Assembly (NCBI GenBank): GCA_047495785.1
Contig: JBLDXI010000032.1
Location: 868,001-932,000 of the forward strand
Direction: 5' to 3'
Source: Lepidodermella squamata
Lineage: Eukaryota; Animalia; Gastrotricha
Length of the DNA: 64,000 bases
The position numbers were made by a program, and so were the translations under genes. Within the stretch, counting starts at the first letter, position 1. The number at the start of each line of letters is the position of its first letter. Below are positions 2,956-59,670 of the stretch, in pieces. The notes beneath the pieces were generated by a model. That model was not told the DNA's origin. It made no database searches and saw nothing but the letters and a program-made list of their open reading frames with translations.

Positions 2956-3210
2956 ACTTATTCTGGTTATGTGTTTTTGGCTGGTTTCTGTGTATAATCT
3001 GATGTGAAGTCGCTCTCTTGCGTAGTTTCGATTTCAGTCGTCGTAATGAAACATAATTATATCAATAAAATAATTATTCGTATGCAAGCATTGTTGTTTT
3101 ATTCTCAAAGCGAGGAATACCAAAGTCGTACAGAAGTCATGCAGAAAAATAATAGACGAAGCAAGATCAATCAAGCGTTATTGCTGAAAATAGCGTATGA
3201 AATAGACGGA

Positions 3211-5100
3211 TTAGGCACGCAAATCCACAACTTGAACATGTATATTCGAGTCCCAGAACACGCTGTCTGAGTCGCATTCGTCGAAAAGTGGTTCCCCTGT
3301 AGTGGTGCCAGCGTGAGTATGGAAACCGGTTTGATTACAGGCCGATACCACGTCGAGACCAGGATCTGTCAGCCTGAAAGTTCTGGTGTCTTCATATTTG
3401 ACACTGCATACGACAGCAACCGATTCTGAACAGAAATAATGTTATCATAATAGATAAAACGCCTCAATGTTATTTTTACCTGGAAGAAGGTGCTGATAAC
3501 CTGCATGTGTATGCAAATCGACAGAGCTGAGGAAGCAAGTTTGGCTTGGATGAGTCTAAAAAAGTATCGCAATTAGCCAACAAGACTATGATATGAAACT
3601 AAATCCAATATTTTATAAAAGCTCAGCGATCAAAGTGCGAAAATCATTGGTAATGCAAGCTAAATGCGAGGACCGACTCGGCTAGATTCTTCCACCGCTT
3701 GCCTCAGATCTCAACGAGAATGCAGCGAGGCACTCAATCGGATACCTGAGCCATGACGATGGAAAAATTTCACCAAGCCGACCTGGCCAAATGGCTGAAC
3801 ATTTCAGACCTTTTACTTCTCATCATCGATAATGCAAAATGATAATAAGAAATCAATTAGAACATACATGAATCCAGCCGACAACAATGACGTTCAGCTG
3901 GTCGGTCATCGCGAATAATTTCTCCTCATCTTCAGTGGTACACGAATCAGGAGTGCCGTGTTGCGGGGGCAATAGAACGTGGGAAACGCGCAATTCGTTG
4001 GTTGTGCTACATGAGGCTGGGGCGCACAAAATTCCGCATGTCTCCGTATCGCGTGACGTGTTGTTCAACGCAAGCCGAAGAAAGGTTGACGCCAGATCAC
4101 CGGGTAATACAATCTTGCGAAGGGTGAACATGGAAGAATGGTGCCGAGCCATTGGTTTGGAAGCCCGATCAACAGCAGGTGTCGATGTCTGCTCGGCAAG
4201 AGTGGGCGAAGGGACTTTGTTAGAGCTATGATGGAGGACGGTGCGGCTAGGTTCCACTGGCTCCGGAGTAGATATTTGAGTCGGTGCGGCTAAATTAGTT
4301 GGTGCCGGCGCCGTGGGGCGATCCTGATGGGTAGATCTGGCCACTCGATGGTGAGCTTCGGCGCGATCTTTGTGCACAGCGTATTGTTCCTCTTGTTCAA
4401 TCTGCTGAGCTATTAACGCCAAGCTATTAAAGGCGAGAGAGCAATAAAAACGCTAACCTAATACTGCATCATCATGGTGCTGCCTATGCTTCTGCGCTAT
4501 ATGCATCTTTTGCATCTGCTCGGCACGCTCTCGTTCATTTCGCGCGGCGGCTTCAGCAGCCTGAAGAGTAAACAGAAACATAAACCAGATTTGAGTAAAA
4601 ATTACAAGTGTCACCTCTTCCGCTGCTCTTTGCTTTTCGTCATCCTCAAATTTTCTCAGCAGCATAGGTTTTAGCCTTTCCGCCTCGTCCAGACTGTACA
4701 TGATGCTCTACAAATTGACAATTGAGAGTCTTAACGGCTCACTTTTCATCAGTCATTGTGACTTTACCCTAATGATGGACTTCTGTTCGGCGGCAGTAAG
4801 CTCCTTAAAGCTCGCATGCGGTTTTACCTTATTCAGATACAGACTGAAATTCACATGAAAACATTCAATTAGCAGGGGCAATAATATATCAACTTACTTA
4901 GAAAACTTGACAAACATATAGAAGGCCTCGTCGATAGCACCGTTGTCGGCTTTGAATTTTGCGGTAGCTATCATGTGATCAGCAGATCGAACATATCGAG
5001 TAACTTTGTCTTTTGCATTGAAAAGCCTAACTCCGTCCGCAGAGGCTTCTTCCACAACCTTCCTCAAGCGATCCTGGGCGTTGCGTATTTCGCAAAACAT
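3211..5100 (-). CDS. STAMBP: STAM-binding protein / AMSH-like JAMM deubiquitinase (multi-exon)
   Basis: N-terminal MIT/USP8-dimer-like helices ([13 protein letters not shown]...EAFYMFVKF), then the MPN+ domain ETCGILCA...[14 protein letters not shown]...GWIH|[26 protein letters not shown]|SVAVVCS...GFHTH...VVDLRA*. JAMM HxHx7Sx2D is intact. Confidence 0.93.
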
Positions 5101-39982: not shown

Positions 39983-42900
39983 ATGTATATGCAGTTCCTC
40001 TGCCTATTGTTGACCCTGGCAGGGTCATGCTGGGCGGCCGAGGACCGCCTCGACGCTGCTCACGTTGTTTTTATCATCGACCCGGTCGACCTATCGCCGT
40101 CTGACCAGACCAATGTCCTAGCTTTCACACGGGAAGCCGCGCGATCGGCGACTAAAAAAGGCGCCAATGTCGGACTTATTGTCGCCGATGATACTTATTT
40201 CACGGATGAGAGCGATTTCCGCAGCATGACCGGATCTAGGCGCATGGACCGTGTCAATCTGTACCAAGTCCAAGCGGAGCGGACTCTGAAAAATTTCAGA
40301 ATGCCAGCAGACCAGCTTTCAGTCTTACCCGACTCGCTTCGCATGCTCGTAATTTGTGAACAATTTATTTTTTTCAAATTTTACTAAAATTTTAATTTCA
40401 ATTTCAAATGTTTAGAATTTCAAATTTTTCAATTCTCGAATTGAAATGATATGAAAATCATTTTCAGCAATTAGGAATTTATTAATTTGATTTCAAAAAT
40501 TTCGATTTTTGGGGCTGTTCACAAACTATTCGCAATAATATATGAAAAGTACTACACTAATAATAATGCAGTACATTTATTATTATTAGTGTAGTACTTT
40601 TCATATATTATTGCGAATAGTTTGTGAATAGACCCTTTTGAAATTTTTAATTATTTGAAATTAATTCAAATTTTTTTAATTTCCTCAATTTTTTACTTCA
40701 ATTTTTTTTACTGTGATTCAGGGCCGCAGGGTGTCTTTTATGAAAAATAACCCTAATGTCATCGTGATCCTGATCACCGGCGCCCAGCGGCTCGATTTCA
40801 TCGCCCTTGGCAACGCTTACCTCGACATTCAATCTGAAACCACCATCCGATATGGCGCCGTTGTTATCGGAAGCAAACTCAGCGTCGACGATTTCGCCTC
40901 CCTCACCGAGTCGCCGTGTCTGGCGATGCAAGTCGCCTCGAGCGATCAGCTGGTCGCCGAGATGAAGCACCAAGCTCGCGTTGCAGTTTTGGTTCGCCGA
41001 CTGACCCGCGCTGTCGATGATCTCGACAACACCGAACGACTTTGCGCGTCGATTGAGGGCGAAACTCAGCAAGAAGTGGAACGCATGACATCTGTCCAAA
41101 ACGAGGACAATCTGGAGGAAATGCAGGAAGAGAAGAATAACGATCAAGTTGAGGAGGAAAAGAAGGAACAAATCGAAGATGAGACCACAACTCCTCAGCC
41201 TGATTCTGAAACCGTTAACACCCGTACTCAATTTGAAGAGGAAACCATGCGGCAAATCGAAAAAACCGAAGGTATGGGTTAAAATGTTCAAAAAGGCTCA
41301 AAATTAAACTTGAAATTTCAAGAATGTTGCAGACAATTTTCAATAATTTTTCGAATTTTCGAATTTTTTTAATTATTCAGATTTTGAAGCGATCAACAAT
41401 TTTCAAAATTTAAATTTTTAAATTTTACTTAAACAATTTTTTTTTAATTTTAATTTACTGTAATATTTTAAATGAAATTTTCTTTTGAATTGAGGTCAGG
41501 GAACCCAGTCTAAGGATCCGTTGGTGTGCTTCCGCTGCGACGGCTGTGGCGAATCGAGCCCTGACCCGCGTTCGGTCATTAACTGTGCCGAATCAACGTC
41601 ATGCTTCACCGCCCGTGTCGGCTTTGGCGCCGATGCTGTGTATGTCCGCGGCTGCGAGGCGAAGTGTTCTGACGTTGACACCCCGGTGCTGAAGCGCATT
41701 TGCTGTAACGAAGGCCGCTGCAACGGTGCCGCTCCGCCCAGCTTCACCGGCAAGGCGCCGAAGAAGTCCGAGATCAAGGATCCTATCCGGGCGCAGAAGG
41801 TCAAAGAAGACAAGAAGATGATCAGGGGTTTGTTTATTTCAAAATTTGGTAATATGAAATATGAAGCATGGGTGACCATGGGTGACCATGGGGGATCATG
41901 GGTGACCATGGGGGATCATGGGTGATTTTGGGTGACTTTGAGTTACCTTTGATGATTTGTGCAATCACTTTAATTTCGAAGGATTCGGGTGACTTTGGGG
42001 GATTCTTAGGCGATTCATAGGGTAACCTTGGGTGATCTTGGGTAACTTAGGGTGATTTGGGTGCTGGGTGTATCGGGAGTATCTTGGACTATTGGGATTT
42101 TTCGGGAGATAATGGGCGACCCTGGGTTATCTGGGTGATCAAAGGTGATCAAGGGTGATCGTTGATCGTGTTTGAGAGGTGACTACTTGTAATTGGGCCA
42201 TATTCTCTTGAACCTCAAGGATTCTCTCAAGGGTGATAATGGGTGACCTCTCACAGCTGAGCGTTGACTTAACGACCTTTTATGTTGGAAGATACAGGTA
42301 TCAATGAGATTGTTTTTGCAGAAAACAAGATCAACTGGCCGCGAGAGATCACCTCGACCTCTACCCAGCCAACTACTACAACCACGCAAGCCGTGACGGC
42401 CCCGAGCAACCCGATGAATGTCCTAGTCTGCTACCGATGCGACGGCTGCTCCGAGGAGGCACCCAGCTCGCACCAGGCTACTCGCTGCGGCGACGCTGAG
42501 AAATACTCGTGCTTCACGTCTCGTGTGGTCGAGGGCGACAAGGTCACTTTCGTTCGTGGTTGCGAGGTCAAGGACAAGTGCTCCAATGTCGATTCGCCTT
42601 TGATGAAACGCACATGCTGCAATTCAAACATCTGCAACGGTGCATTCGGTACGGTTAACCTTTTTCTATAACATCAAGTTACTCGGCTGTTATACATTTG
42701 AGCTTTCTAGATGATTTTGGATGCTCAGGAAATAGGTCAGGTTTTAAGGATTTAGAGCTTCGCTAAGGGCTCAAATCGAATTTGTTTGCGATAACTATTT
42801 TTGAAGTTCGGACGTCCGGAAGTCCGGTTTCGGGCTTCACGCCATAGTTCCAGGTTAGCTCCTGAGTTCTGAAGGGTTTTCGGATCCATAATGTCGCGGA

Positions 42901-45900
42901 ATGCCCAGAAATTAGAATCTGGGTAAAGGTTCAAAGTTCCAAGTCTCAGGGAGTGGGGCTCAGGGATCGGGTTCAGGTCTCGGGGTTCGGAAATACAGAT
43001 AGTTAAAGGTTCAGGATTTTCGATGAAGGGTTTTGCCCGGGCTCCAACAAGGCTCAAGGTTCAGGACTGGTCCAAGTTCCAGTTATCCATTTTTTAGGGG
43101 TTTTCGAAGCTTGGAATTCCGGATTTGGGTTCGGATTTTAGGGATTCAGGGTTCAAGGTTAGGGATTCCAGCTTTCAGGGTTTGGGTATAGGGTTCCGGG
43201 TTTCCAGCTTCCTTGTGTCACGATTTTGGGGTCAAAGTTTCACGTTATAATTTCGGAGGCTCCAAATGTACTAATATTGAGTTTATTTTCCGTAACCAAG
43301 GTGACCAAAGTGCGGTTGTCAAACGCTCGACGACCACTCCAAGAGCCGAGCTGCAATCATACAGCGCCCTGACCTGCTACCGCTGCGACGGCTGCGGCGA
43401 ATCCGCCCCTGAAAGCCACCAGGTCCTAAAATGCGGCGACATCAACAAATACTCCTGCTACACGGCCTTTTTCGAAGGCACCTACGTCCGCGGCTGCGAG
43501 CTTAAGGGAAAATGCATTGAAGTCGACTCGCCCTTGCTGAAGCGCACCTGCTGCGACTCGACCATGTGCAACGGCGCCGTAAGCACCCTGCGCACGACGA
43601 AGAAGTCATCGAAAACCACAAAACCGACTACTCCAGCTGTTCCATCGACAGCAGGCCCGACCATCCCGCCGATCGATCTCGCCAAGAGGCTCGTCGGGGA
43701 CATTGTCGATGCCGAGGTTAACCGGCCGTTCGCCAACGTTGAGCTGTACGTTGTCATCGACTTCGCGAATCTCACCAGCCCGGCTGATATGGAGGTCGTC
43801 AACTTCGGCAAGAAGTTCGCCGTTGAAGCGGCGATTCTTGGCGCTGAAGCGGCGCTGTGCAACGGCAACCGCATTCGCCGCGTCTCGCCCTACCAGATCT
43901 ACGTTGCGTTTGAGAATGCGAAGAAGCGCCCGACTAATGATGAAATCGTTCGTCGATTCGATAGCGAACTTCACATGGAGCCGGTTAAGGTTCAGCAGAA
44001 GGTTCGCATTCATCAGTATGTTACGACTACCCAGGCTCCGAAGAGCACCTCGACATTGCCGGAAAGCTTCAGTGAATTGGTAAGCACTTCATTTACGACT
44101 CAGCTAGTGCAGTCAAAAAATCTAGAAAAAACTTTGAACTTCGAAAATAATTTCGTACGGAAAACTGCTTAATTGCGGGTTGATGAAATTTAAAAAATAA
44201 ATTGAAATTTTGAAATTAAATACGCTAAACTGAAAGATGGGTGATCTAGGGTGATTAGGTAAATTTCGTACCCTTAGATAACCTTGGGTCTCTTGGAATT
44301 CCGAGGATCATGGGTCATTTTGGGTCATTTTTTACCTTGAATCAGCATTATAAAAACTTGAAAAATTTGTTATTTTTATTAGAATAAATTGTTCAAAAAC
44401 ACTTCAATTTAAGGTTGGAGAAACTGATGGACAGAAATCTCACAAAACCCTAAAATTCAACCTTAATTTTTTTCAATTCTGAAATTCAAAAATTTTGATT
44501 TAAAAATTTAATTCGAAAAATAGGAACTAAGATTGTGAAGAAAAATTGGAACTAAAATTGGAGAGCTCAAAAAATCTCTATTGTACCTAACTCCATTTCA
44601 GTTTTCGAATTTTTTCCGTAATGTCCCAAACGAAGGAATTCAAGGATATATTTTCGACGGGTTTTGATGCTTTGATCTGAAAATCCACCTTAATATTGAA
44701 ATTGTTAATCAAACGCTGAGTAGCCTAACGGTTGAAATGTGGATTTTCCGGAAATTTGTAAGGCGAGTTTGGTGGAACTTCAAATTTCAAAAGGGAAACT
44801 TTCAAAAAGCTCTGAAAAGATTCTGTACAACCAGTTCATCCAAAAAATTTCGAGCAATTATTGGAGAATGAATGAAAACTTCAAGCACTCTCTCCACTAA
44901 TTGTTTGCATTATTTTGAGTTTTGAAATGAATTTCAACTTTTTAGATTTGAAATTTTTGAATTTTTGCAATTTGAATTTCGAAATGGATTTCTTGAAGTT
45001 TGAAGTTTGAATATTCTGAATGCTGATTTTTATATCTTTTATCAGGCCGACAAGCTGATTCTCACGCAAGACCCTGCCTCTCACCGCGATTTGTTCATCG
45101 TTTTCCTCACCGCAGCTGAAATGACGCAAACCGGCGCGATGAGCATGTGGGATAGCCACGAAAAGATCTCCGAACTGAAGCCTCACTACCTAACGCTGAT
45201 GCTCGGCAAGAAGACGGACGCCGAGTCGTTCATCGAACTGAACGAGAACAGCGAAAACCCGCGCTGCATGGTCATGCGCTTCGAATCTATGCCGAAGCTG
45301 TCGGCGGCTGAGGTTGAACTGTCCCGCCTGCTGGTTGAAAGCGTCGACTACGTCCGCGCCCACGAAACCCTATCGACCTTCCGCTGCGGCCACGAACCCG
45401 CTGCTCCAGTCACCCGAGCCAGGGCGACTACGACGACGACCACCCCAGAGCCTGAGGAGGAGCCGGAACCAGTCGAGCAAGATGAGGAGGGTACCAAGGT
45501 CGGCCCTGTTCACGTGATGACCAAGCCGGAAGACCCGACCCAGGTGCTGATTGTCGAGCCTGAGGCCGAACCTCAAGCTAAGCCGGAGCCGGAGCCTGAG
45601 GTTGAACTTCATACCAAGAAGACGGTGGTTGAAATTGAAGTTGTCGATAAGAATGGCGAGGCGATTGAGAAGATCGTTGTTGTTCCTCGCACGAAGCCTG
45701 ACCAGGAGGAGGGTGAGAAACCGGAGGATCTTGAAGATGCTCGCCGTGTTGTTGTCGTGGTCGAGGAAGAGCCGATGGCTAAGAAGGGCCATGGCCACAA
45801 GGAAGAGGTCGAAAAGATCATGGAAGGCCTCGAAGAGCCTCAAGCAAAGGGTTAGACAATTTAAATTTCAAATAATAATTTCAAATTTGAAAATTCGAAA

Positions 45901-47483
45901 ACTTTGAATTTGAATTTTAATACATTTTATTTTATGAAGTTTTTAAAATTTTAAAAAATCTTTAAAATTTCCAGAATTCTCAAAAATGCCACATTTTTTC
46001 CATTATTTTATTTGCTAATTTTTTCGTAATTTCTTTCGTAGATTCGCATAAACCTGAGACCGTGGTCATTATCGAGCCCGAAATGGAGGAGGGTCACGCC
46101 GGCGATATGGCCCATCCCAAGAAGCATGCTAAGAAGCACGTCAATCACGACGAGTACGACGTGGCGGAAACTCATGATGAGCACGTCAAGCGTGAAAAGG
46201 CCGAAAAGCTGCACAAGCAGCAGATTGCTCACGATGAGTACGACGACCAGCATGGCGGCAAGAAGGAACAGGTTGAACAGGTTGAGAAGAAGGAGGAGAA
46301 GCCTGCTGAGGAGGAAGAAGAGCCGGTTGCCAACAAGCCGACTACCGAAACTCCGAAGAGTAAGCTAAATTTGAACTATAGTTTCGAAGTACCGAAAAAT
46401 TGGAAACTAGTCAACATCGAATTGTGGTTTTTAATATCCGAAAAGTTTAGTTTTTCAAATTTGTTCGAAGTTTTTTTTGAGAAAATATTTCATTTTTCTT
46501 ACTTCGAAACCATCCTTTCCATTTGTGCCCGAAATTTTAGGAGATAATCATTTCGAGTTCTTCCCCTATCAACATGAACTTCGATAGAGAAAAATTCGAT
46601 TATTATGAATTCTAAAACCCCATATTTCTATCATTCACCGTTAAGGAGAAAATCTAATTTCAAGTGGGTCACGTGACCATGCGTAATGTCACACCTGAGT
46701 GATTATCTCGAGAACATTGATAGATAAGAAGCCGCTCTCAAAGAAAAAGTTAATCACCGTAATGAGATCTACCTATTAATGCCTTCAATATGGTCCAAAA
46801 ATTGACGCTTCGGTGGATTTTGTTAACAATCCCACTGGTCACCCTATAGGATAAAAAAATCGATTTTCGGAAATCAAAATCAATAACGCGATAAAAGCAT
46901 TTCCATTTTTTCAATTCGGACTTTTCTAATTATTTAAGGTGGCTTGTCTAATTTGGCCGCCGGTTTCGGATCTATATTCAATATCTTTTCCTCGGATCCA
47001 ACTGTAGAGCCGGCGAAGAAGCATGACAAGCACGACCACAAGCACGACCACGATCACGCTGAAGCCGCGAAACCCGACGATGCCACCACCACCACCACCA
47101 AGTCATCAACCGAAGGCCGCCTGTTGTGCTACAAATGCGACCACTGTTCGGCTGACCAGCCATCGTCCGACTCGATTGTCGAGTGCGGCAGCGGCAACCT
47201 GACGTCGCCGAACCGTGGCGTCTGCTTCATCCAACGCATGGGTGACAAGTACTCGCGCGGCTGCATCGAAGGCTACGAGTGCCTCGAGACAACTACGCCC
47301 GAGCTGACCAACTTCTGCTGCAACTCGCATAGCCTGTGCAACGACGTGCTGCCGCGGTCGATCGCCGCCAAGGTCGACGCGAAGAAGAAGTCCAAAACGG
47401 CGAAGTCTGCAAGCTCCGCCCCGGTTGCCAACGCTATGGTCGCTGTTGTCGTTATTTCTGGCCTTGTCGCCATGATTCTGTAA
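39983..47483 (+). CDS. Large secreted/GPI-type mosaic protein: SP-VWA-like-acidic-LU-LU-LU-VWA-like-E/K/H-rich-LU-hydrophobic tail; exons 39983-40348, 40722-41271, 41495-41827, 42322-42648, 43301-44079, 45046-45850, 46042-46359, 47008-47483
   Basis: Signal peptide MYMQFLCLLLTLAGSCWA; VWA-like strands HVVFIID/ANVGLIV/VIVILIT and ELYVVID/LFIVFLT; four C(Y/F)xCDxC...C(F/Y)...RGC...C...CCxxxxCN LU modules; phase-consistent splice sites; C-terminal AMVAVVVISGLVAMIL*. Confidence 0.82.
40512..40635. repeat. ~124-bp near-perfect palindrome (hairpin/MITE) in an intron
   Basis: TTCACAAACTATTCGCAATAATATATGAAAAGTACTACACTAATAATAA is mirrored by TTATTATTAGTGTAGTACTTTTCATATATTATTGCGAATAGTTTGTGAA. Confidence 0.92.
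41868..42250 (+). repeat. Degenerate G-rich ~10-bp minisatellite (GGGTGACCAT/GGGTGATCTT); related tracts at 42830-43210 and 44238-44335
   Basis: ATGGGTGACCATGGGTGACCATGGGGGATCATGG... decays into GGGTGA/GGGTTC variants. Confidence 0.7.
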
Positions 47484-47839: not shown

Positions 47840-48372
47840 TTTAGCCGAATAAAGCGCTGTCTATTGGCAGCTCGAAATGACGAGGTCGATTTGTTGAACG
47901 ATTGCTTCTTATAAAGGATACTTATGCCTCAGAAGGAATTAGCATACATACGTATACTTGAGCGCCGATTCCGTTGTTAATCCGAATCTGCGGCAATTCC
48001 ATCCTACCGAGTTGCTCAATACCTCTCCGTGTTGGTTCTGAAAGTGGGTACCCCATCGCATTCTGTTGAGAAATTCGGCCCTGCGTCAGATTTATGCAAT
48101 GGAACGAGATTATCTATGTTCAGCGATTGCGACACAACGTTATTGAAGGCAAGATTCATACTGGAAGCTTTGCTGGGAAAATTGCTCAGATCCCACAAAT
48201 TCCTCTCATCGCTGATCAGGATGGTAAACCTGTTGTCATTCGTCAAATGCCCGTCCGATTAGCCTTCAGCTGCTCAGTAAACAACTGCCAGGGTCAGGCT
48301 TTCCATTTTGGTCTGTTCCTCAAGCAGTGTGAGGCTTTTTCACACGATAAACGTTATGTCATTCGCGTGTGA
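47840..48372 (+). pseudogene. Helitron RepHel (PIF1-like helicase C-terminus) remnant
   Basis: Frameshifted RCLLAARNDEVDLLND, YLSADSV, HPTELLN, LKVGTP, LCNGTRL, NVIEGKIHTG, IPQIPL, RQMPVRLAFSCSVNNCQGQ, FSHDKRYV are colinear with the Helitron helicase consensus (RQFPVRLAFAMTINKSQGQ, FSHGQLYV). Confidence 0.9.
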
Positions 48373-49186
48373 CTGACCCTCGCAATTTATTTGGCATGGA
48401 TAGTTCATACCGTTCATTACAGTATACTATTAAATTTGAATATGATAAACAAAAATTATCAAAAATGATTAAACTGACACCTACACGCAATTTATCAGTA
48501 TATAAAACATGCGGCACCGCTTGAAAATCCTGATAAATTTGTAATTTCTGATAAAATATACGGCACCAAAGCTTCCCGCAGCAAAGTGTTATTTTTCTGC
48601 TTCCTTAATGATTTTAGCATGTACAACGTTGCTTCTGCGTTTCAGGAATTCAAGAATTCGCCATTTATCAAACCGGAAGTGGAAAAAAATCGGCCCGTAG
48701 GAATTCGCTTTATTTTTGGAAACACCTGAAATAACTGCGAGTATTAAGTATAAAAGATCAATATTTGAAGGGATAATTAAGCTCCAATAATTGGCAAGAT
48801 GATACAGTAATACCACTGGTCTCAAACGAGCAATAAGTAATCGCGTAGAAGTATAATCCATCAAATCAACATCGAATTAATTAAGGTAGATCGATCAGAA
48901 CTGAAAATCAGTTTTTTATAGTTGAAGAGAGAATTGAGTTTCGAAATGCGAACCAGGCTTGGACATCAAAACGTAACGCGTTGCCGCGCAAGGGAAAATA
49001 ACCAAGACCTTAGTTTAGAGGCAAATTTATAAACAAACAAATCGAATGAAATTTCAGCTATACAAAAACGACCGCAGTAGGTTAAAGTAGCGAGCGGCGG
49101 AAATCAGTGAAAAAACGGTAAAAAATCGGAAACATAATGTCTTCTCACACATTTTGAATATAGTCGCGAAATTTAGAAAAAACGTA

Positions 49187-49768
49187 GCATTATACTCCTG
49201 TTTTGCAGGTCAAAGGTCACACGTGCACACGTGATGAAAACGTGTGATCAAAACACTAAACTTTTAAGTTGTTGCTTGTTGTTAAGTTGGTGGGGGTTTC
49301 GTCATTTCGTCATTTCGTCAATTCGTCACTTTGAAAAACTTCCAAAAGACCGAAAAAACTTACAAAAAATAAAAAAAATGATATGAGCTGGAGTCGAACT
49401 ATCAACCTCTGGTTTCGAGTGCTAGTGCTGGAACCACTAAGCAAGCAAGTTGTCTTAAAATCGTGTGCATCGATCTTGTTGAAGTATGCTTTAACTGGGG
49501 CCTATATCAATTGATTCTAAGACGGGTCCCATGTGTCTCCTGTGTGGTTTAGTGGTTCAAGCTATAGCTCAGGAAACCAGAGGTTGATAGTTCGACTCCA
49601 GCTCACAACATTTTTTTTTATATTTTTTTTTCATGGTGACGAAATGACGAAATGACGAAACGACGAAACTACCACACTAGCAACAACCTAAAAGTTTAGT
49701 GTTTGGATCACACGTTTTGATCACGTGTGCACGTGTGACCTTTGACCCGCAAAACGGGAGTATAATGC
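49187..49768. mobile_element. 582-bp fold-back element with two divergent tRNA-like cassettes, flanked by a GTA direct repeat, inserted in the recombinase 3' end
   Basis: GCATTATACTCCTGTTTTGCAGGTCAAAGGTCACACGTGCACACGTGAT... (from 49187) mirrors ...ATCACGTGTGCACGTGTGACCTTTGACCCGCAAAACGGGAGTATAATGC (to 49768). Arms ~250 bp around a ~100-bp spacer. GTA at 49184-49186 and 49769-49771. Confidence 0.9.
49538..49619 (+). ncRNA. tRNA-derived Pol III-type cassette (A box, B box, T-run); inverted twin at ~49371-49445 on the minus strand
   Basis: A box TGGTTTAGTGG at 49545-49555 and B box GTTCGACTC at 49590-49598 (45-nt start-to-start spacing as in tRNA positions 8 and 53), then T9 at 49611-49619. Stems pair poorly, so this is not a functional tRNA. 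Confidence 0.6.
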
Positions 49769-51211
49769 GTAGGCATGTTCACTTGGGGCAATGTATTGCT
49801 CGTAGGTTGCAGAAGCCACGCCTTCCGAATGATGTAAAAACCTATCGATTACCAGCTGCATTGTTCCGGGTAAGCCTGGAATGTTTTGATGGCGAGACGT
49901 AGTTTGCATCATCCTTCGCTGCATCGAAAAATGAAATGCTGGGAGAGCTGGTCTTTCTTTGACCGGCATGGAACGAACGAAATCGTCCCAAAGTACACTC
50001 ACGTGATAGGACAGATGCTGAAACCGTGAGCCATCTTGACGGAGTAGAACGTATTTCGCGCTGGTCGCATCAGCCGGCTTTGGACGATACTTGTTCAGGT
50101 ATTCCTCGTATAGTGCCATCAGTTCCTCATCAAGAGTGACGTAGGGAAAGCACCGTTTGCCGTACTTCGTCTCCAACACGTGTATGGTAGTTGTTCCCGG
50201 GATTTCTGACTTCCGGTTCTCGTATTCTCGCATTGTCATGCCGATGATGCTAGTAGGACGACACCCGTTCAACGCATTCATTTTGACGGCGATTAGAGCG
50301 ATGCGATAAACGTAGGGAACAGATAGTCCAGCCTCTTCCAAGCCTGAAATCGAGTCTCGAATGAAATTGGCGTATTTTGGTGCGGTGAATATTGTAACTT
50401 GGTCGTTAGTTCGTTTATGTTTCAATTGGGCGCTTGCCAAAGACCGCTGTTTGTTCAGCATCAAAATTCGCGGATTCAGGCATTCCTTGACTATACTGTC
50501 ACATGCGGCACGCTCCTCGTCAGTCACTTCTCTCCGATTGCACAAAAATCCGTTCCTGTACATGAGTAGAAAGTCCCGTACAGCCGCCAACCTCATGTAA
50601 GAGGTGTGAGGTGAAACTTTAGTCACCTTTTTCCACCTGCTGGAAACGACATCGGAACTGGCGAAATAGTCGTACCACAACTCGTTATTAAAGACGTCGG
50701 ACATAGTTTTCATTCCAGCTAATTCAAGCGTCATTTTCAAATGAGAGGAACGCGAAGAAACCGTTCGACTGTTTCGTGGTTCTTGAAGCTGTTCAACCAT
50801 GTAATCAGGATCGCCGTACCTTTGCTTGAGCAACAACAATCTCTTCTCCTCCGATTTAGACGAGGAAAATGACTGTATAGATGTGCCAGATTGTTTTTGA
50901 CGTTTGCTAGAACTGCTATCTTTAGGGCGAAACTCCGGTGTTAGAACGGCTTCTACAGCAGGCCCTCGAGCAGAACGAGATCTTGAAGCACGCGTCGTCA
51001 TTGGAGAAACGACGGATTTCGGCACCACAGTTGGTTTAACGGATCGAGACCGTGATTTGCGGCTGGTTGATGCTTTTGGCGAGTCACACTTCTCCGAATT
51101 GTGAACGGAGGATGTTGAGACATCACGTGATGGCCGCGAATTTTCGTCGCTTCTCCCCGACAGCTGAAAATATCTTGAATCGTTAATTTCATCGAGTGAA
51201 TCACTCGGCAT
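49721..51211 (-). CDS. Tyrosine recombinase (lambda-integrase fold, Crypton-like), 496 aa, intronless ORF
   Basis: Catalytic residues in order: NALNGC-R-PTSIIGMT (R), IHVLET-K-YGK (K), FHFSMQ-R-RMMQT (HxxR equivalent), RFLH-H-SEGVASAT-Y (H/W and Y). Helical core-binding-like region upstream and an S/R-rich disordered N-terminus. Confidence 0.85.
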   Translation of the reverse strand: MPSDSLDEINDSRYFQLSGRSDENSRPSRDVSTSSVHNSEKCDSPKASTSRKSRSRSVKPTVVPKSVVSPMTTRASRSRSARGPAVEAVLTPEFRPKDSSSSKRQKQSGTSIQSFSSSKSEEKRLLLLKQRYGDPDYMVEQLQEPRNSRTVSSRSSHLKMTLELAGMKTMSDVFNNELWYDYFASSDVVSSRWKKVTKVSPHTSYMRLAAVRDFLLMYRNGFLCNRREVTDEERAACDSIVKECLNPRILMLNKQRSLASAQLKHKRTNDQVTIFTAPKYANFIRDSISGLEEAGLSVPYVYRIALIAVKMNALNGCRPTSIIGMTMREYENRKSEIPGTTTIHVLETKYGKRCFPYVTLDEELMALYEEYLNKYRPKPADATSAKYVLLRQDGSRFQHLSYHVSVLWDDFVRSMPVKERPALPAFHFSMQRRMMQTTSRHQNIPGLPGTMQLVIDRFLHHSEGVASATYEQYIAPSEHAYALYSRFAGQRSHVHT

Positions 51212-52762
51212 CTCCGCTGAATTTGATTCGCTGAGATCAAAGCTTTCTCCGAGTTGCTGTTAATCGAGTGCTCGTCATTTGAGTCGAGATGAGCAGGCGT
51301 TGAACACCGAACAGGATTATTCCCCTTTGAAAATTTCCAGTTTTAATTTACGCTTTAATCCGGTAAAATTTAGAAAATCTAATTTATTTTATGAAGAATT
51401 CGAAATTTACCTGTAACTGAACCTGATCCGCATCGGCAGCTGCTGCTACCACCAGAAATTGTGATCGAAGCTTGGCGTTCGAATCTTTCACTCGGATTCA
51501 CTCGGATTCACTCGCATTGGCAGAAACTACCATCTTTAGATGATGAGGCTAAGTCGTGATTTGAAGCTGTTTTGCACCGACAAATGCTGTCGTTTGCTGT
51601 CATAAATGAGCGATAATCAGCATGCCCCTGATAATTCGTTGAGTTGATGGCTTGCGATGGGATCGGAGCGAGTAAGATTTCAGCTTTAGCCAGTTCGAAA
51701 GCATTAGGACCATGAGCCTTAGCGCGAATGCAGTAATTCATTATGTGACGCTTGAGAATCTTGGACGAATATTTTCGATGGCAGAATACTCGCGAACCGC
51801 ATTTCTCTTTATTCGATTCCGTCGCTTATACGGGAGATGAGCCGCGAAACGACCATTGCTCGAACGACTGGGCTCTCGAGAATCGAATGGAGAAGAAGAA
51901 ATTTTCATTGATTAGCCGAAAAAAGTCGTATTTAAAATCTAAGGGGAAAAATAGTAATTATGAGCATAGCATTTTATTTCGAGATACCCTTGAGCTAAAA
52001 AAATGTTCCGATATACATAAAAACCAGTGGAACAATGTTCTACGCGGGCGGGAGAATCTCGAGATAAAAGAAACAAAGCATTAGTGATGGTTAAAAACGT
52101 GATATTGAGTAACAAGCGGTAGAGTTAAATGTTCAATTATTCGGGCTAATAATATTAAAAAACAGGGGCGACCGCATTCATTTAAATTTTGATTTAAATA
52201 AAAAACCTCATTTTAAATATTGGTCGTAGTGCAATCTCATTGGTAATGCCGCTTCTACAGGTCATTCAACATTCAAAGTTTGGCGGTTTTTCGATCGAGA
52301 ATTTGCGGAAAAAATAAGATCCAACCATTTTTACGACAAATTTCTAGTTAACATTCCGCCTTATTTAAATTAGAACCTAAGATGAGCCAATAATAGCTTC
52401 TGAATTTGCTCGTAAAATATCCCTAATTCGCTAATTATATTTTTCAGCTAAAAAAATAAGCTTTTTTAATTAGAGGCGCAATTTTTCGAATTTAAAAAAA
52501 ATTGCAAATCGATTCGTTGGCGCTGAAAAATTCCTGCTAGTCTCTCGCATAAAATAACGCAAACTTCCGTTCACCTTACTAGTGGTTAGTATTTGATACG
52601 AACAGAAAAGTTGAGAAGAATGACCAGGCCGATTCGATCAGTTTTATAAGGAAAATAAGACAAATTATTAGAAACTAATCATTTTCGTCTCCTGGCAGAA
52701 ACACGCTTCCCACAATTTCCACATCCCACACAGCTTTGTTGCTGTTCTTCAGGAATCTTGTC

Positions 52763-55146: not shown

Positions 55147-55357
55147 GGTTTATCAGACCACATTGAGATACGGCCTCAAGCCCCGGGTCGGAGGGGCCTT
55201 TTACTAACTTATCTTTTCTGCGTTCTTGCTTGCAGCATTTCACCCTAGTGCTCGATAAGATATAGAAAATAAACATCTAGATAAGCACCTGCTCTGTTCG
55301 CCCCGACAGTCTGTATTTTTGCTGTTTTGCGGTGCTCACAGTTTATGCTCGAGGAGA

Positions 55358-58300
55358 ATGGTCCAAAGGTTTCAATCATTCGGTGAGTTAACCAAAATCA
55401 GATGCCTGGGCAGTGGCGCTTTCGGATCTGTTTGGCACTGCAAGGCTAAAGACGATATCGCGGACTACGCTGTTAAGGTGGTCAATCTCAGCGCGACTCG
55501 ACGAAATTATGAGCAGAAAGATCGGATTATGGCTGAGAAACTAGTCAAATTGGCCCGCAATGAGGTTGTTTGGTCATAATACAATAAAACAACCGTTACT
55601 ATGGATTCATTCTACCAGCATGTCAAGCTGCAAAATTTGAGGCACGCAAGCATAGTCGCGCTGTACGGAGCGTTTGAAGGTTAGGTGAAGACTTGGAAGA
55701 TTAATAGTAGAAATCCATCACATTTTTCGAAATGTTTTCCCAGATCTTTTGTTTGAAATTGATGATACGAACCAAAACAAGAACATAATATGGCACGTGG
55801 ATGACGAGATGTACTACCTCGTCACAGAGTTCTGTCCTGGCGGAGATTTGGAAGCTTACACTAAACAAACCAAACAAAACAATGAAACTATTGCAGAAAC
55901 GTTTTTAACGCATTTGGCCCGCCAATTAGTATCGGCCGTAGGCTGTCTGCATCAATGTGGAGCACTCCATCGGGATATCAAGCCAAAAAACATTTTCCTA
56001 TGTGAAGATGGGAAAACTGTCAAATTGGGCGATTTTGGATTCGCGAAAATCTACAATGGGTGAACATTTCCTGCATTGCACCTGCGATAACGGCTTATCG
56101 TATTACTTTTCAGCTCGTCAAGCAGTACGACCTTTGGACTCGGAACGCCGATTTACGCCGCACCCGAAATTTTTAGTAAGGAGCAGCACTCACCTGCCAG
56201 TGATTGGTGGTCTCTCGGGGTCACGTTGTTCGAAGTGGCCTATCTTCGCCTACCTGTAAATAAAAAATAAAAAATGCAAATCATAATTGATTTTCATAAT
56301 TTTTACAGTTCGAAACAACTTCTGATATTATTAGGTACGTTAAAAGACCTGTACTGCTCTTTGAATATCCTCAATAAGATTCATATCTGAACAAGACTTA
56401 TGAAAGATTTTTCTAACAATTGATGTATCTTTCTTATTAAGGGAATCAGCGCAGCCAAAATTCGACGATCTCAGATTTTCGCAAGACTTCCGGAACTTCT
56501 TGCTATCTATGCTACACAAAAACAGATCAAGAAGAGCTAACGTGGAGGAATTACTAGCCAGCCCTTTCTTGACGTCGAACCTACGAAGAGGGAATACATC
56601 CAACCCATCGAACAATACCAGCACTGCAATCGATTCTGAAGCGGCGTTGAAAGTGAGCTAATACATTGATGATATATTGCGGTAAACATTTCAACATTCA
56701 AACTGTTACCACTCACAGCTGCTATTTAAATACTCAAGGCAACGAAAAATGCTGCCGGAAATTGTGAAGTTGCTGAACAATAGTCAATTGGATGTAAACA
56801 GTAGAAACGACGACGGCTTCACGCCATTGATGATAGCCGCGCAAGAAGGATTCCACGAATTTATGAAGCCATTGGTAGAAAAAGGGGCCAACGTCGATTT
56901 AGTGGACGAGCTTGGCAGAACGTCGCTCTACATAGCTGCTAAAAATGGTCATTTCAAAGTTGTGCAAGTTCTTGCCACAGATTTAAGAGCGAATGTCGGA
57001 GCAACTGGGGACGGCGGGGCGTCGCCGTTATGCATCGCCGCAGAGAACGGTCACTTGAAACTCGTGAAGCTCCTTGCTCGCGAATTCGAAGCCAACGTAA
57101 ATGCTGCAACAGATGATGGTGCTACGCCGTTATACGTCGCTGCTCAAAATGGTCACTCAGAGATCGTGAACCTTCTCGCAGGAAACTTCGAAGCAGATGT
57201 GAATGCACCGGACAAAAATGGTGTTACGCCGTTACACTTAGCTTCATATAGTAACGACTTGGAAGTAGTGAAGCTTCTCGCTGGAAACTTCAATGCTAAC
57301 GTAAATGCTGCAACGGATGATGGTGCTACGCCTTTATACATAGCTGCTCAGAATGGTCATATCGAAATCGTGAAACTTCTCGCTGGAGACTTCCAAGCCA
57401 ATGTGAATGCAGCGAACAAAAATGGTGTTACGCCGTTACACTTAGCTTTGTATAGTAACGACTTGGAAAGTGTGAAGCTTCTCGCTGGAAACTTCAATGC
57501 TAACGTAAATGCTGCAACGGATGATGGCGATACGCCTTTATACATCGCTGCTCAGAAAGGTCATTTGGAAATCGTGAGGCTTCTTGCTGATGAATTCAAA
57601 GCCGATGTGAATGCAACGAACAAAAATGGTGTTACGCCTTTACACGTCGCTGCTCAGAAAGGTCATTTGGAAATCGTGATGCTCCTCGCTGATGAATTCA
57701 AAGCCGACTTTAATGTGACGACGAATAATGGTGGTACGCCGTTACACATCGCTGCTCAAAATGGTCACTCAGAGATCGTGAACCTTCTCGCAGGAAACTT
57801 CAAAGCAGATGTGAATGCAGCGAACAAAAATGGTGTTACGCCGTTACACTTAGCTTCATATAGTAACGACTTGGAAGTAGTGAAGCTTCTCGCTGGAAAC
57901 TTCACTGCCAACGTAAATGCTGCCATGGATGATGGCGATACGCCGTTATTCATCGCTGCTCAGATTGGTCATTTGGAAATCGTGAGGCTTCTTGCTGATG
58001 AATTTGAAGCTGATGTGAATGCAGCGAACAAAAATGGTGCTACGCCTTTATACGTCGCTGCTCAGAATGGTCATTTGGAAATCGTGAGGCTCCTTGCTGA
58101 TGAATTCAAAGCTGATGTAAATGCTGCCATGGATGATGGTGCTACGCCTTTATACGTCGCTGCTCAGAATGGTCATTTGGAAATCGTGAGGCTCCTTGCT
58201 GATGAATTCAAAGCTGATGTAAATGCTGCCATGGATGATGGTGCTACGCCGTTATTCATCGCTGCTTACAATGGTCATTTGGAAATCGTGAGGCTCCTTG

Positions 58301-59653
58301 CTGATGAATTCAAAGCTGATGTAGATGCTGCAACGGATGATGTTGCTACGCCTTTATACGTCGCTGCTCAGAATGGTCATTTGGAAATCGTGAGGCTTCT
58401 TGCTGATGAATTTGAAGCTGATGTGAATGCAGCGAACAAAAATGGTGCTACGCCGTTACACGTCGCTGCTCAGAATGGTCATTTGGAAATCGTGAGGCTC
58501 CTTGCTGATGAATTCAAAGCTGATGTAGATGCTGCAACGGATGATGTTGCTACGCCTTTATACGTCGCTGCTCAGAATGGTCATTTGGAAATCGTGAGGC
58601 TTCTTGCTGATGAATTTGAAGCTGATGTGAATGCAGCGAACAAAAATGGTGCTACGCCTTTATACGTCGCTGCTCAGAATGGTCATTTGGAAATCGTGAG
58701 GCTTCTTGCTGATGAATTTGAAGCTGATGTGAATGCAGCGAACAAAAATGGTGCTACGCCGTTATACGTCGCTGCTCAGAATGGTCATTTGGAAATCGTG
58801 AGGCTCCTTGCTGATGAATTCAAAGCTGATGTGAATGCAGCGAACAAAAATGGTGTTACGCCGTTACACTTAGCTTCATATAGTAACGACTTGGAAGTAG
58901 TGAAGCTTCTCGCTGGAAACTTCACTGCCAACGTAAATGCTGCCATGGATGATGGCGATACGCCGTTATTCATCGCTGCTCAGATTGGTCATTTGGAAAT
59001 CGTGAGGCTTCTTGCTGATGAATTTGAAGCTGATGTGAATGCAGCGAACAAAAATGGTGCTACGCCGTTACACGTCGCTGCTCAGAATGGTCATTTGGAA
59101 ATCGTGAGGCTCCTTGCTGATGAATTCAAAGCTGATGTAGATGCTGCAACGGATGATGTTGCTACGCCTTTATACGTCGCTCGCTGCTCAGAATGGTCAT
59201 TTGGAAATCGTGAGGCTTCTTGCTGATGAATTTGAAGCTGATGTGAATGCAGCGAACAAAAATGGTGCTACGCCTTTATACGTCGCTGCTCAGAATGGTC
59301 ATTTGGAAATCGTGAGGCTTCTTGCTGATGAATTTGAAGCTGATGTGAATGCAGCGAACAAAAATGGTGCTACGCAGTTATACGTCGCTGCTCAGAATGG
59401 TCATTTGGAAATCGTGAGGCTCCTTGCTGATGAATTCAAAGCTGATGTAAATGCTGCCATGGATGATAACGATACGCCGTTATGCATCGCTGCTCAGAAT
59501 GGTCATTTGGAAATCGTGAGGCTTCTTGCTGATGAATTCAAAGCCGATGTGAATGCAACGAACAAAAATGGTGCTACGCCGTTATGCATCGCTGCTCAGA
59601 ATGGTCATTTGGAAATCGTGAAGCTTCTGGCTGGAGGCTCAATTCCGATGTGA
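55358..59653 (+). CDS. Ser/Thr protein kinase (NEK-like) fused to ~28 ankyrin repeats; exons 55358-55564, 55619-55679, 55744-56059, 56114-56255, 56309-56334, 56442-56652, 56720-end; 4-bp frameshift at ~59181
   Basis: GSGAFG, YAVK, NE|[27 protein letters not shown] and the subdomain XI Arg are all intact and splice in phase into 34-aa GxTPLxxAAxNGHLEIVxLL repeats. TCGC is duplicated at 59177-59184. Confidence 0.9.
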
Positions 59654-59670
59654 ATGCAGCGAACAAATTT
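56800..59670 (+). repeat. Coding tandem array of 102-bp ankyrin units with very high internal identity
   Basis: Repeated GCTGCTCAGAATGGTCATTTGGAAATCGTGAGGCT...GCTGATG. The block at ~57810-58050 recurs at +1020 bp (~58830-59070). Confidence 0.95.

Follow-up and report, generated by a model that had tools for sequence, protein, structure and literature searches.

Cryptons are low-copy elements that lack terminal inverted repeats (TIRs), carry direct repeats of 4-6 bp at their ends and sometimes contain a second open reading frame (ORF). Domesticated genes derived from them, which carry the DUF3504 domain, have lost the catalytic residues (Kojima and Jurka, PMC3212892). Stand-alone DNA elements encoding a tyrosine recombinase (YR) are rare in animals and little understood. 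Szitenberg et al. detected no Crypton in 34 nematode genomes, and the YR elements reported from nematodes are PAT-like and DIRS-like (PMC4157794). Here, a YR gene is described from a stretch of 64,000 nucleotides of the gastrotrich Lepidodermella squamata (contig JBLDXI010000032.1, positions 868,001 to 932,000; the whole stretch is referred to as the window). With about even confidence, the locus is read as a damaged copy of a Crypton-type YR DNA element, low in copy number and so far undescribed, in which a zinc-finger YR and a membrane protein form one module.

The recombinase gene and its family

The main ORF encodes a long N-terminal linker followed by two domains, the second of which holds the putative active site. 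Its features are as follows.

49721-51211, minus strand: main ORF of 496 aa with ATG start, single-copy in the 64-kb window
Residues 1-124 of the main ORF: Ser/Arg/Lys-rich low-complexity linker
Residues ~125-300 of the main ORF: helical core-binding-like domain
Residues ~300-480 of the main ORF: catalytic domain
50260-50258, minus strand: R318 (NGCRPTS), Arg-I
50167-50165, minus strand: K349 (ETKYGKR), beta-hairpin Lys
49927-49925, minus strand: S429, at the position of the HxxR His
49918-49916, minus strand: R432 (SMQRR), Arg-II
49831-49829, minus strand: H461 (LHHSEG), His/Trp-III
49804-49802, minus strand: Y470 (SATYEQY), Tyr nucleophile position

An exhaustive HMMER search among 1.84 billion cluster representatives, with residues 125-496 as query, found 10 relatives (best E 3e-30, 38% identity). 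R318, K349, R432, H461 and Y470 are invariant in every family row that covers them despite an overall identity of 23-45%, and active-site conservation at this level of divergence is, judged from the aligned proteins, far beyond chance. The family shares the motif series NAxxGxRPS / VxGxK..P.VS / YxxxRP / FxFxxQRxxxQT / LxHxxxxxxxxY. The HxxR His position is S429 in the window protein and S, G, Q or N in the relatives, never His; the missing His is therefore a family trait and not a lesion of the window copy. A minority of bona fide YRs also lack the HxxR His, and its absence does not exclude activity. An earlier sequence-only reading of this DNA had placed a YR gene at 49721-51211, with R, K, R, H and Y present and the HxxR His replaced (SMQRR). 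The gene is borne out by fold, family profile and conserved active site, and the residue pattern holds across the family.

Taken alone, the window protein has no Pfam, NCBIfam or PDB sequence match even at E<=10, and nothing useful was obtained from PHROGs or from tblastn against phages. A word-based protein search with the single window sequence gave no matches, and with the alignment it recovered relative P0007 only. AlphaFold (AF2) returned an unusable model from the single sequence, with a predicted local distance difference test score (pLDDT) of 33; with the 13-row family alignment, pLDDT was 77.4 and the predicted template modelling score (pTM) 0.63. In a Foldseek search of the PDB, the top 50 of at least 500 matches are all YRs (best E 1.8e-4, probability 1.00), among them XerH, Tn1549 Int, XerA, Cre/Tre, Flp, TelA, XerD and lambda Int. 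The alignments with YRs span about 370-400 columns, which correspond to the core-binding and catalytic domains. The family profile matches archaeal XerA (4a8e) at E=4e-4 with Lys, Arg-II, His-III and Tyr in register, and the Tn1549 integrase more weakly. A single family member matches PF00589 (Phage_integrase) at 0.0014, and P0007 matches the PHROG integrase family phrog_1 at 3e-9.

The main ORF is, by predicted fold and conserved active site, a real and very divergent YR. The DNA breaking-rejoining fold was returned as the sequence-only reading had anticipated, and the protein is not closely related to any Crypton family described so far. A chance or decayed ORF with superficial motif likeness, that is, no functional recombinase, would account for a single sequence without Pfam, NCBIfam or PDB match, for the poor single-sequence AF2 model and for the missing HxxR His. 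It is contradicted by the profile and structure matches, by the family-wide conservation of the active site and by an open frame of 496 codons, and is hardly credible. The family is too divergent for Pfam, yet its nucleophile and transition-state set is complete without the HxxR His.

The eight relatives looked up all come from short contigs (1.4-6.3 kb) in a few ENA and Logan assemblies that have SAMN13674978 as common biosample label. The P0001 gene is interrupted by a canonical GT..AG intron of ~53 nt that the window gene lacks, the P0008 gene has a second exon, and the GC content of the contigs is 34-41%; on these grounds the contigs are regarded as eukaryotic. Contigs from different assemblies are 99-100% identical (0-7 differences), so they represent one organism sequenced repeatedly and provide no information on the ratio of nonsynonymous to synonymous substitutions (dN/dS). 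At least seven deeply divergent paralogous lineages (P0001-P0004 and P0006-P0008) occur in assemblies of apparently one biosample. In addition, contigs L016 and L017 contain a 5'-truncated fragment comprising the last ~100 codons of a P0001-like gene (75-78% nucleotide identity).

Repeats and remnants of a transposable element (TE) are found close to several relatives.

L002, 4387-5136: repeat-rich stretch
L010, 583-1173 and 5158-5458: repeat-rich stretches
L001, 1-120: repeat-rich stretch
L012, 5765-6277, minus strand: pogo-like DDE_1 transposase fragment adjoining P0008

The ends of the relatives' contigs carry satellite arrays with units of 53, 171, 175 and 40 nt. An interpretation of these arrays as terminal repeats was rejected, as they are mutually unrelated and absent from the window.

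Pattern scans with sub-family alignments found no further members in JGI metagenome contigs or IMG/VR. No homolog was found in any annotated proteome among the 1.84 billion representatives, a set in which repeat masking could hide TE genes; this absence is weak evidence on the true distribution and may reflect the masking of annotated eukaryotic genomes. The relatives looked up all come from naively gene-called metagenome contigs, which suggests that such genes may be missed systematically in masked, annotated eukaryotic genomes.

Partner gene and lesions of the window copy

A second gene is encoded directly upstream of the YR gene on the same strand.

52763-about 53600, minus strand: partner gene, encoding an orphan Cys-rich multi-pass membrane protein

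The partner protein has invariant cysteines, a WAxxFSxI(K/R)PxCAxL motif and, towards the C-terminus, about four hydrophobic segments, and its gene contains a single canonical GT..AG intron of 48 nt (53529-53482). It has no Pfam, PHROG or PDB match. By tblastn it matches the gene upstream of P0001 in L001/L002 with E about 4e-32; in L001 this homolog lies 78 nt upstream of the P0001 gene. Partner homologs are also located upstream of the P0003 gene (L005) and downstream of the P0004 gene (L006/L007), and probably upstream of P0006, as L014 and L011 parallel L005. The order is thus membrane protein (TM) before YR in the window, P0001 and P0003, and YR before TM in P0004. In complete family members, the zinc-finger YR gene usually adjoins a partner gene on the same strand. 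Like the recombinase family, that of the partner is rare, comprising four database proteins from the samples that also yielded the recombinase relatives, and the two-gene arrangement is kept between partners of only 31-45% protein identity. The sequence-only reading saw no other transposition gene nearby and thereby missed this conserved partner. No description of a module of YR and membrane protein was found in the literature. The recurrent linkage of a YR with an orphan membrane protein points to either a new small type of YR element or a new recombinase domestication.

Within the partner gene of L006, a 237-nt segment (3174-3410) is absent from the otherwise 99.7% identical L007. This may represent an indel polymorphism or may have arisen in assembly.

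The 3' end of the recombinase gene is interrupted by an insertion that resembles a miniature inverted-repeat transposable element (MITE).

49187-49768, no strand assigned: foldback (palindromic, MITE-like) insertion of 582 bp within the 3' end of the coding sequence (CDS)
49145-49186, minus strand: displaced native 3' end of the CDS, which reads VFSKFRDYIQNV and then a stop

Over ~250 nt, the arms of the foldback share about 81% identity; they include mirrored (TTTCGTCA)4 arrays. The insertion is flanked by a 3-bp direct repeat, GTA, at 49184-49186 and 49769-49771. The final 15 codons of the main ORF and its stop belong to the insertion; the same 15 codons recur inverted in the far arm, outside any gene. 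If the foldback and one GTA copy are skipped, the frame continues as ...EHAY-VFSKFRDYIQNV-stop, which resembles the C-termini of the relatives (...QHAQ-VFNVFSNFF.. and ...QHAQ-VFKVFQKFF..). The present tail, ALYSRFAGQRSHVHT, is unlike them. From the GTA flanks and the restored family-like C-terminus it follows that a MITE-like element replaced the native tail, 11 residues after Y470. Long inverted arms, a flanking GTA duplication and restoration of the host frame on removal, the features of a foldback or MITE, are all present. A second copy is not found in the 64-kb window. C-terminal tails of YRs mediate contacts between protomers, and by analogy the replaced tail may impair the window copy.

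Two other interpretations of the palindrome were rejected. A tRNA-derived foldback with tRNA-like inner arms was considered; ARAGORN found no tRNA, and the only Rfam match is a far-below-threshold miRNA hairpin, obtained because the palindrome is a long hairpin. A role as the element's own recombination site, or as a substrate of the telomere-resolvase type, was discarded in favour of an unrelated foldback insertion because of the 3-bp duplication, the restoration of the family C-terminus on removal and the lack of a similar structure in any relative.

The 5' end is altered as well. Five relatives have an N-terminal zinc-finger motif, CxxC-x12-H-x4-C, and a corresponding segment is located upstream of the main ORF in the window. 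The zinc-finger exon and the main ORF were searched as separate exons.

51511-51825, minus strand: open frame with the zinc-finger motif KCGSRVFCHRKYSSKILKRHIMNYC (about 51804-51730), found with a hidden Markov model (HMM) of the relatives only, E=3.6e-5
51487-51518, no strand assigned: 10-nt tandem repeat TGAATCCGAG (gene strand), 3.2 copies, overlapping the TGA that closes the zinc-finger frame

In tblastn searches of the window, the zinc-finger segment is the best match of P0001 and the second-best of P0002, and it lies within longer weak high-scoring segment pairs of P0003 and P0008. The first Cys pair is Cx5C, compared with CxxC in the relatives. The frame has no in-frame ATG ahead of the motif and is closed by a TGA at 51510-51508, to whose disruption of the zinc-finger frame the TGAATCCGAG repeat possibly contributed as a slippage product. 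Stops occur in all three frames between this exon and the ATG of the main ORF at 51211. As far as the sequence allows, 51511-51825 is considered a detached 5' exon or exon remnant. An 'NGRF' N-terminal motif in another frame upstream of the zinc finger was not significant (E about 7).

An intron at ~51410-51325 had been called out of frame and taken as a sign of decay. It is indeed out of frame; other candidate GT..AG pairs would preserve the frame and link the zinc-finger exon to the main ORF, e.g. donor 51530 and acceptor 51217, and therefore the splice argument alone is no proof of decay. That the copy is starting to decay is nevertheless supported by the foldback-replaced tail and the detached zinc-finger exon. 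For the same reasons the gene, first described as intact, is so in its catalytic core, to judge by the residues present, and not in its termini: the foldback accounts for the final 15 codons, and the zinc-finger exon stands apart from the main ORF.

Genomic setting and extent of the unit

The window is animal chromosomal DNA that is not human- or vertebrate-like. Its genes are compact, with confirmed introns of ~48-56 nt, a style that may point to a nematode-like invertebrate, and the neighbouring ORFs encode OCRE, Cav-beta-type guanylate kinase, Rft-1, CUB, rhodopsin-type seven-transmembrane (7tm_1), JAB/MPN and protein kinase domains. The unit of YR and partner gene is bounded by host-like genes, namely a Cys-rich ORF on one side (end at 47483) and kinase exons on the other (from 55319), so any element here is at most about 8-9 kb long. 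No long direct or inverted repeats were found flanking the gene pair in the window. A TE remnant is located within these bounds.

48029-48372, plus strand: Helitron helicase remnant, frameshifted and 5'-truncated; its ORF 48094-48369 corresponds to residues 1370-1453 of the Helraiser transposase (E=3.1e-10)

The adjacent frame of this remnant has a weak Pif1_2B match. The remnant lies ~0.8 kb past the 3' end of the recombinase gene and is neighbouring TE debris outside the recombinase unit.

The bounding genes exclude a giant or virus-sized element. They bear on a further explanation, according to which the locus is a fragment of a larger virus-like or giant element (an endogenous large DNA virus, or a Maverick-like or Starship-like element) in which the membrane protein would be part of the virion or envelope. 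The Cys-rich membrane protein would suit such an origin, and named matches in a viral structure library include VLF-1 of nudiviruses and YR proteins of giant viruses among many integrases. These matches are generic, with 14% identity or less and no specific affinity; genes for a capsid, polB, a packaging ATPase or other viral functions are absent, the IMG/VR pattern scan gave no matches, and host genes enclose the unit within about 8-9 kb. A viral origin is regarded as very improbable.

No reverse transcriptase (RT), RNase H, gag, polB or capsid was detected in the Pfam-scanned ORFs between 47.5 and 56 kb of the window, and Pfam scans of the contigs of about eight relatives likewise found none of them. 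This agrees with the sequence-only reading, which had noted no gag, RT, RNase H, polB or capsid and had set the locus apart from DIRS and Ngaro. The same results speak against derivation from a YR retrotransposon (DIRS, Ngaro or PAT-like) by loss of gag, RT and RNase H, with a solo recombinase gene as the remnant. Such a remnant would be in line with the PAT/DIRS type of the nematode YR elements and the lack of Cryptons in 34 nematode genomes (PMC4157794). Neither methyltransferase genes nor inverted terminal or split direct repeats were found, and the architecture of zinc finger and membrane-protein partner recurs without RT in every lineage examined. A retrotransposon remnant is therefore rated as quite improbable.

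Further features of the window do not involve the recombinase unit. Downstream of the protein-kinase exons (Pkinase 2.7e-20) comes a long ankyrin array without introns; exons and array together span 55319-59667 on the plus strand. The array has a 102-nt period with about 26 copies of 80% identity, and a frame break near 59141-59226 divides it into ORFs of 825 and 170 aa. On the other side of the unit, two paralogous Cys-rich ORFs (43213-44172 and 46944-47483, plus strand) share a CY.CD.C... pattern and have no Pfam match; we take their appearance to be Ly6/uPAR-like. Between them, at 45007-46547, ORFs very rich in Glu, Lys and Pro are found. Short GC-rich tandem repeats with a 10-nt unit of the CATGGGTGAC type are located at 41867-41936 and 42020-42062, and the region of 42-44 kb, which holds repeats of this type, is the most GC-rich stretch of the window (GC 0.51).

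Nature of the locus and comparison with known systems

Several traits of the family are element-like: the divergent lineages, a truncated copy, TE- and satellite-rich surroundings, the lack of RT and, in the window, lesions at both ends, which are as expected for a decaying TE copy. By analogy, we infer catalysis, a circular intermediate, mobility and a role of the partner protein. The zinc finger and the core-binding domain would bind the element ends. Y470 would act as the nucleophile and become joined to the DNA by a 3'-phosphotyrosyl link, with R318, K349, R432 and H461 stabilizing the transition state. Two ordered strand exchanges via a Holliday junction would then excise the element as a circle, which could reintegrate at short matching sequences. 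The permuted order of the two genes (TM before YR or YR before TM) would be expected from this mechanism if the circular form opened at different points. The window copy itself is probably no longer autonomous, since the foldback replaced the tail and the zinc finger has an altered Cys pair, no start codon and candidate splices only.

A number of observations weigh against a Crypton-type element. The locus is a single copy in the 64-kb window, and the window and the short contigs of the relatives define no ends, terminal direct repeats or empty sites and no dispersed copies that are nearly identical. In both genes, the introns are short, as in host genes, and placed differently from lineage to lineage, and the GC content at third codon positions (GC3) falls within the host range. 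None of the 11 family members matches DUF3504 or DUF3435 at E<=1; the likeness to animal Crypton YRs that had been proposed for this gene found no support in these searches, the only matches, weak ones, being Phage_integrase and phrog_1. The HxxR His is lacking throughout the family, which leaves the R-H-R-Y tetrad of Cryptons incomplete. For P0007 and P0008, the 2.7-3.5 kb of upstream sequence contains no partner gene. The conserved pairing of the two genes could just as well reflect host microsynteny or an operon, and the relatives may stem from one organism or several.

Part of these observations would be accounted for by a domesticated host gene pair, in which the genes of a nuclear protein derived from a recombinase and of a membrane protein stay adjacent, e.g. 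in an operon, and have multiplied like any other gene family within a sparsely sampled invertebrate lineage, the window paralog being in the course of loss. Adjacency is conserved despite the 31-45% identity between partners, the genes in L001 are just 78 nt apart, the introns are canonical, short and lineage-specific, GC3 is host-like, and the window holds a single copy among ordinary host genes. Against domestication, all five catalytic residues are strictly kept, unlike in the known Crypton domestications (DUF3504), which lost them (PMC3212892). Truncated copies, TE- or satellite-rich surroundings and the permuted gene order of P0004 also argue against it, and disruption of the window copy at both ends is unexpected under host selection. 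The lack of a homolog in annotated proteomes points the same way, though masking could hide TE genes too. Domestication is thus possible but on the whole doubtful.

A further-reaching proposal is made only tentatively: the family may represent a new superfamily-level lineage of eukaryotic YR DNA elements, forming a compact module of a zinc-finger YR without the HxxR His and a Cys-rich multi-pass membrane protein, and moving via a circle, in an animal lineage without reported Crypton-type elements. If active, a eukaryotic recombinase that combines compact size with a zinc-finger module for targeting could be of interest to tool developers.

DIRS, Ngaro and PAT retrotransposons resemble such an element as eukaryotic mobile elements that encode a YR. 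They differ from it by their gag, RT, RNase H and methyltransferase genes and by inverted or split direct repeats, none of which is found in the window or near the relatives.

The best structural and profile matches are to prokaryotic and phage YRs (XerA/XerH/XerD, Tn1549 Int, Cre and lambda Int; PF00589, phrog_1), with which the family shares the two-domain fold of core-binding and catalytic domain and R, K, R, H and Y in register. Identity to them is 11-14%. The gene described here is eukaryotic and its relatives contain introns; the protein differs further by its zinc finger, by a long N-terminal linker of low complexity and by a small or polar residue in place of His-II. Apart from this missing His-II, the modelled fold and the active site place the protein in the YR superfamily.

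Cryptons (Goodwin 2003; Kojima and Jurka 2011, PMC3212892) share with the family a stand-alone eukaryotic YR gene with introns and without RT or RNase H. No long repeats were found to flank the unit, in keeping with the lack of TIRs and long terminal repeats in Cryptons; the copy number is apparently low in both, both have deeply divergent lineages, and some Cryptons likewise have a second ORF and an added DNA-binding domain. Here, the DNA-binding addition is an N-terminal CxxC..H..C zinc finger and not GCR1_C, and the second gene encodes an orphan membrane protein and not a C48 peptidase. The Crypton-derived Pfam domains DUF3504 and DUF3435 are not matched; of the R-H-R-Y tetrad, R, R and Y are present and the His is S/G/Q/N across the family; and the single copy and the short contigs give no definable ends or terminal direct repeats of 4-6 bp. 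Membership in Cryptons proper is not established because DUF3504/DUF3435 affinity, the complete tetrad and defined ends are lacking.

The domesticated DUF3504 genes (KCTD1, ZMYM2-4, QRICH1 and WOC) are comparable in that a YR-derived domain and zinc fingers are found in single-copy, intron-containing host genes of animals. The family described here has no DUF3504 match, and its zinc finger is not of the MYM type. Moreover, the domesticated genes lost most catalytic residues, whereas this family strictly keeps R, K, R, H and Y.

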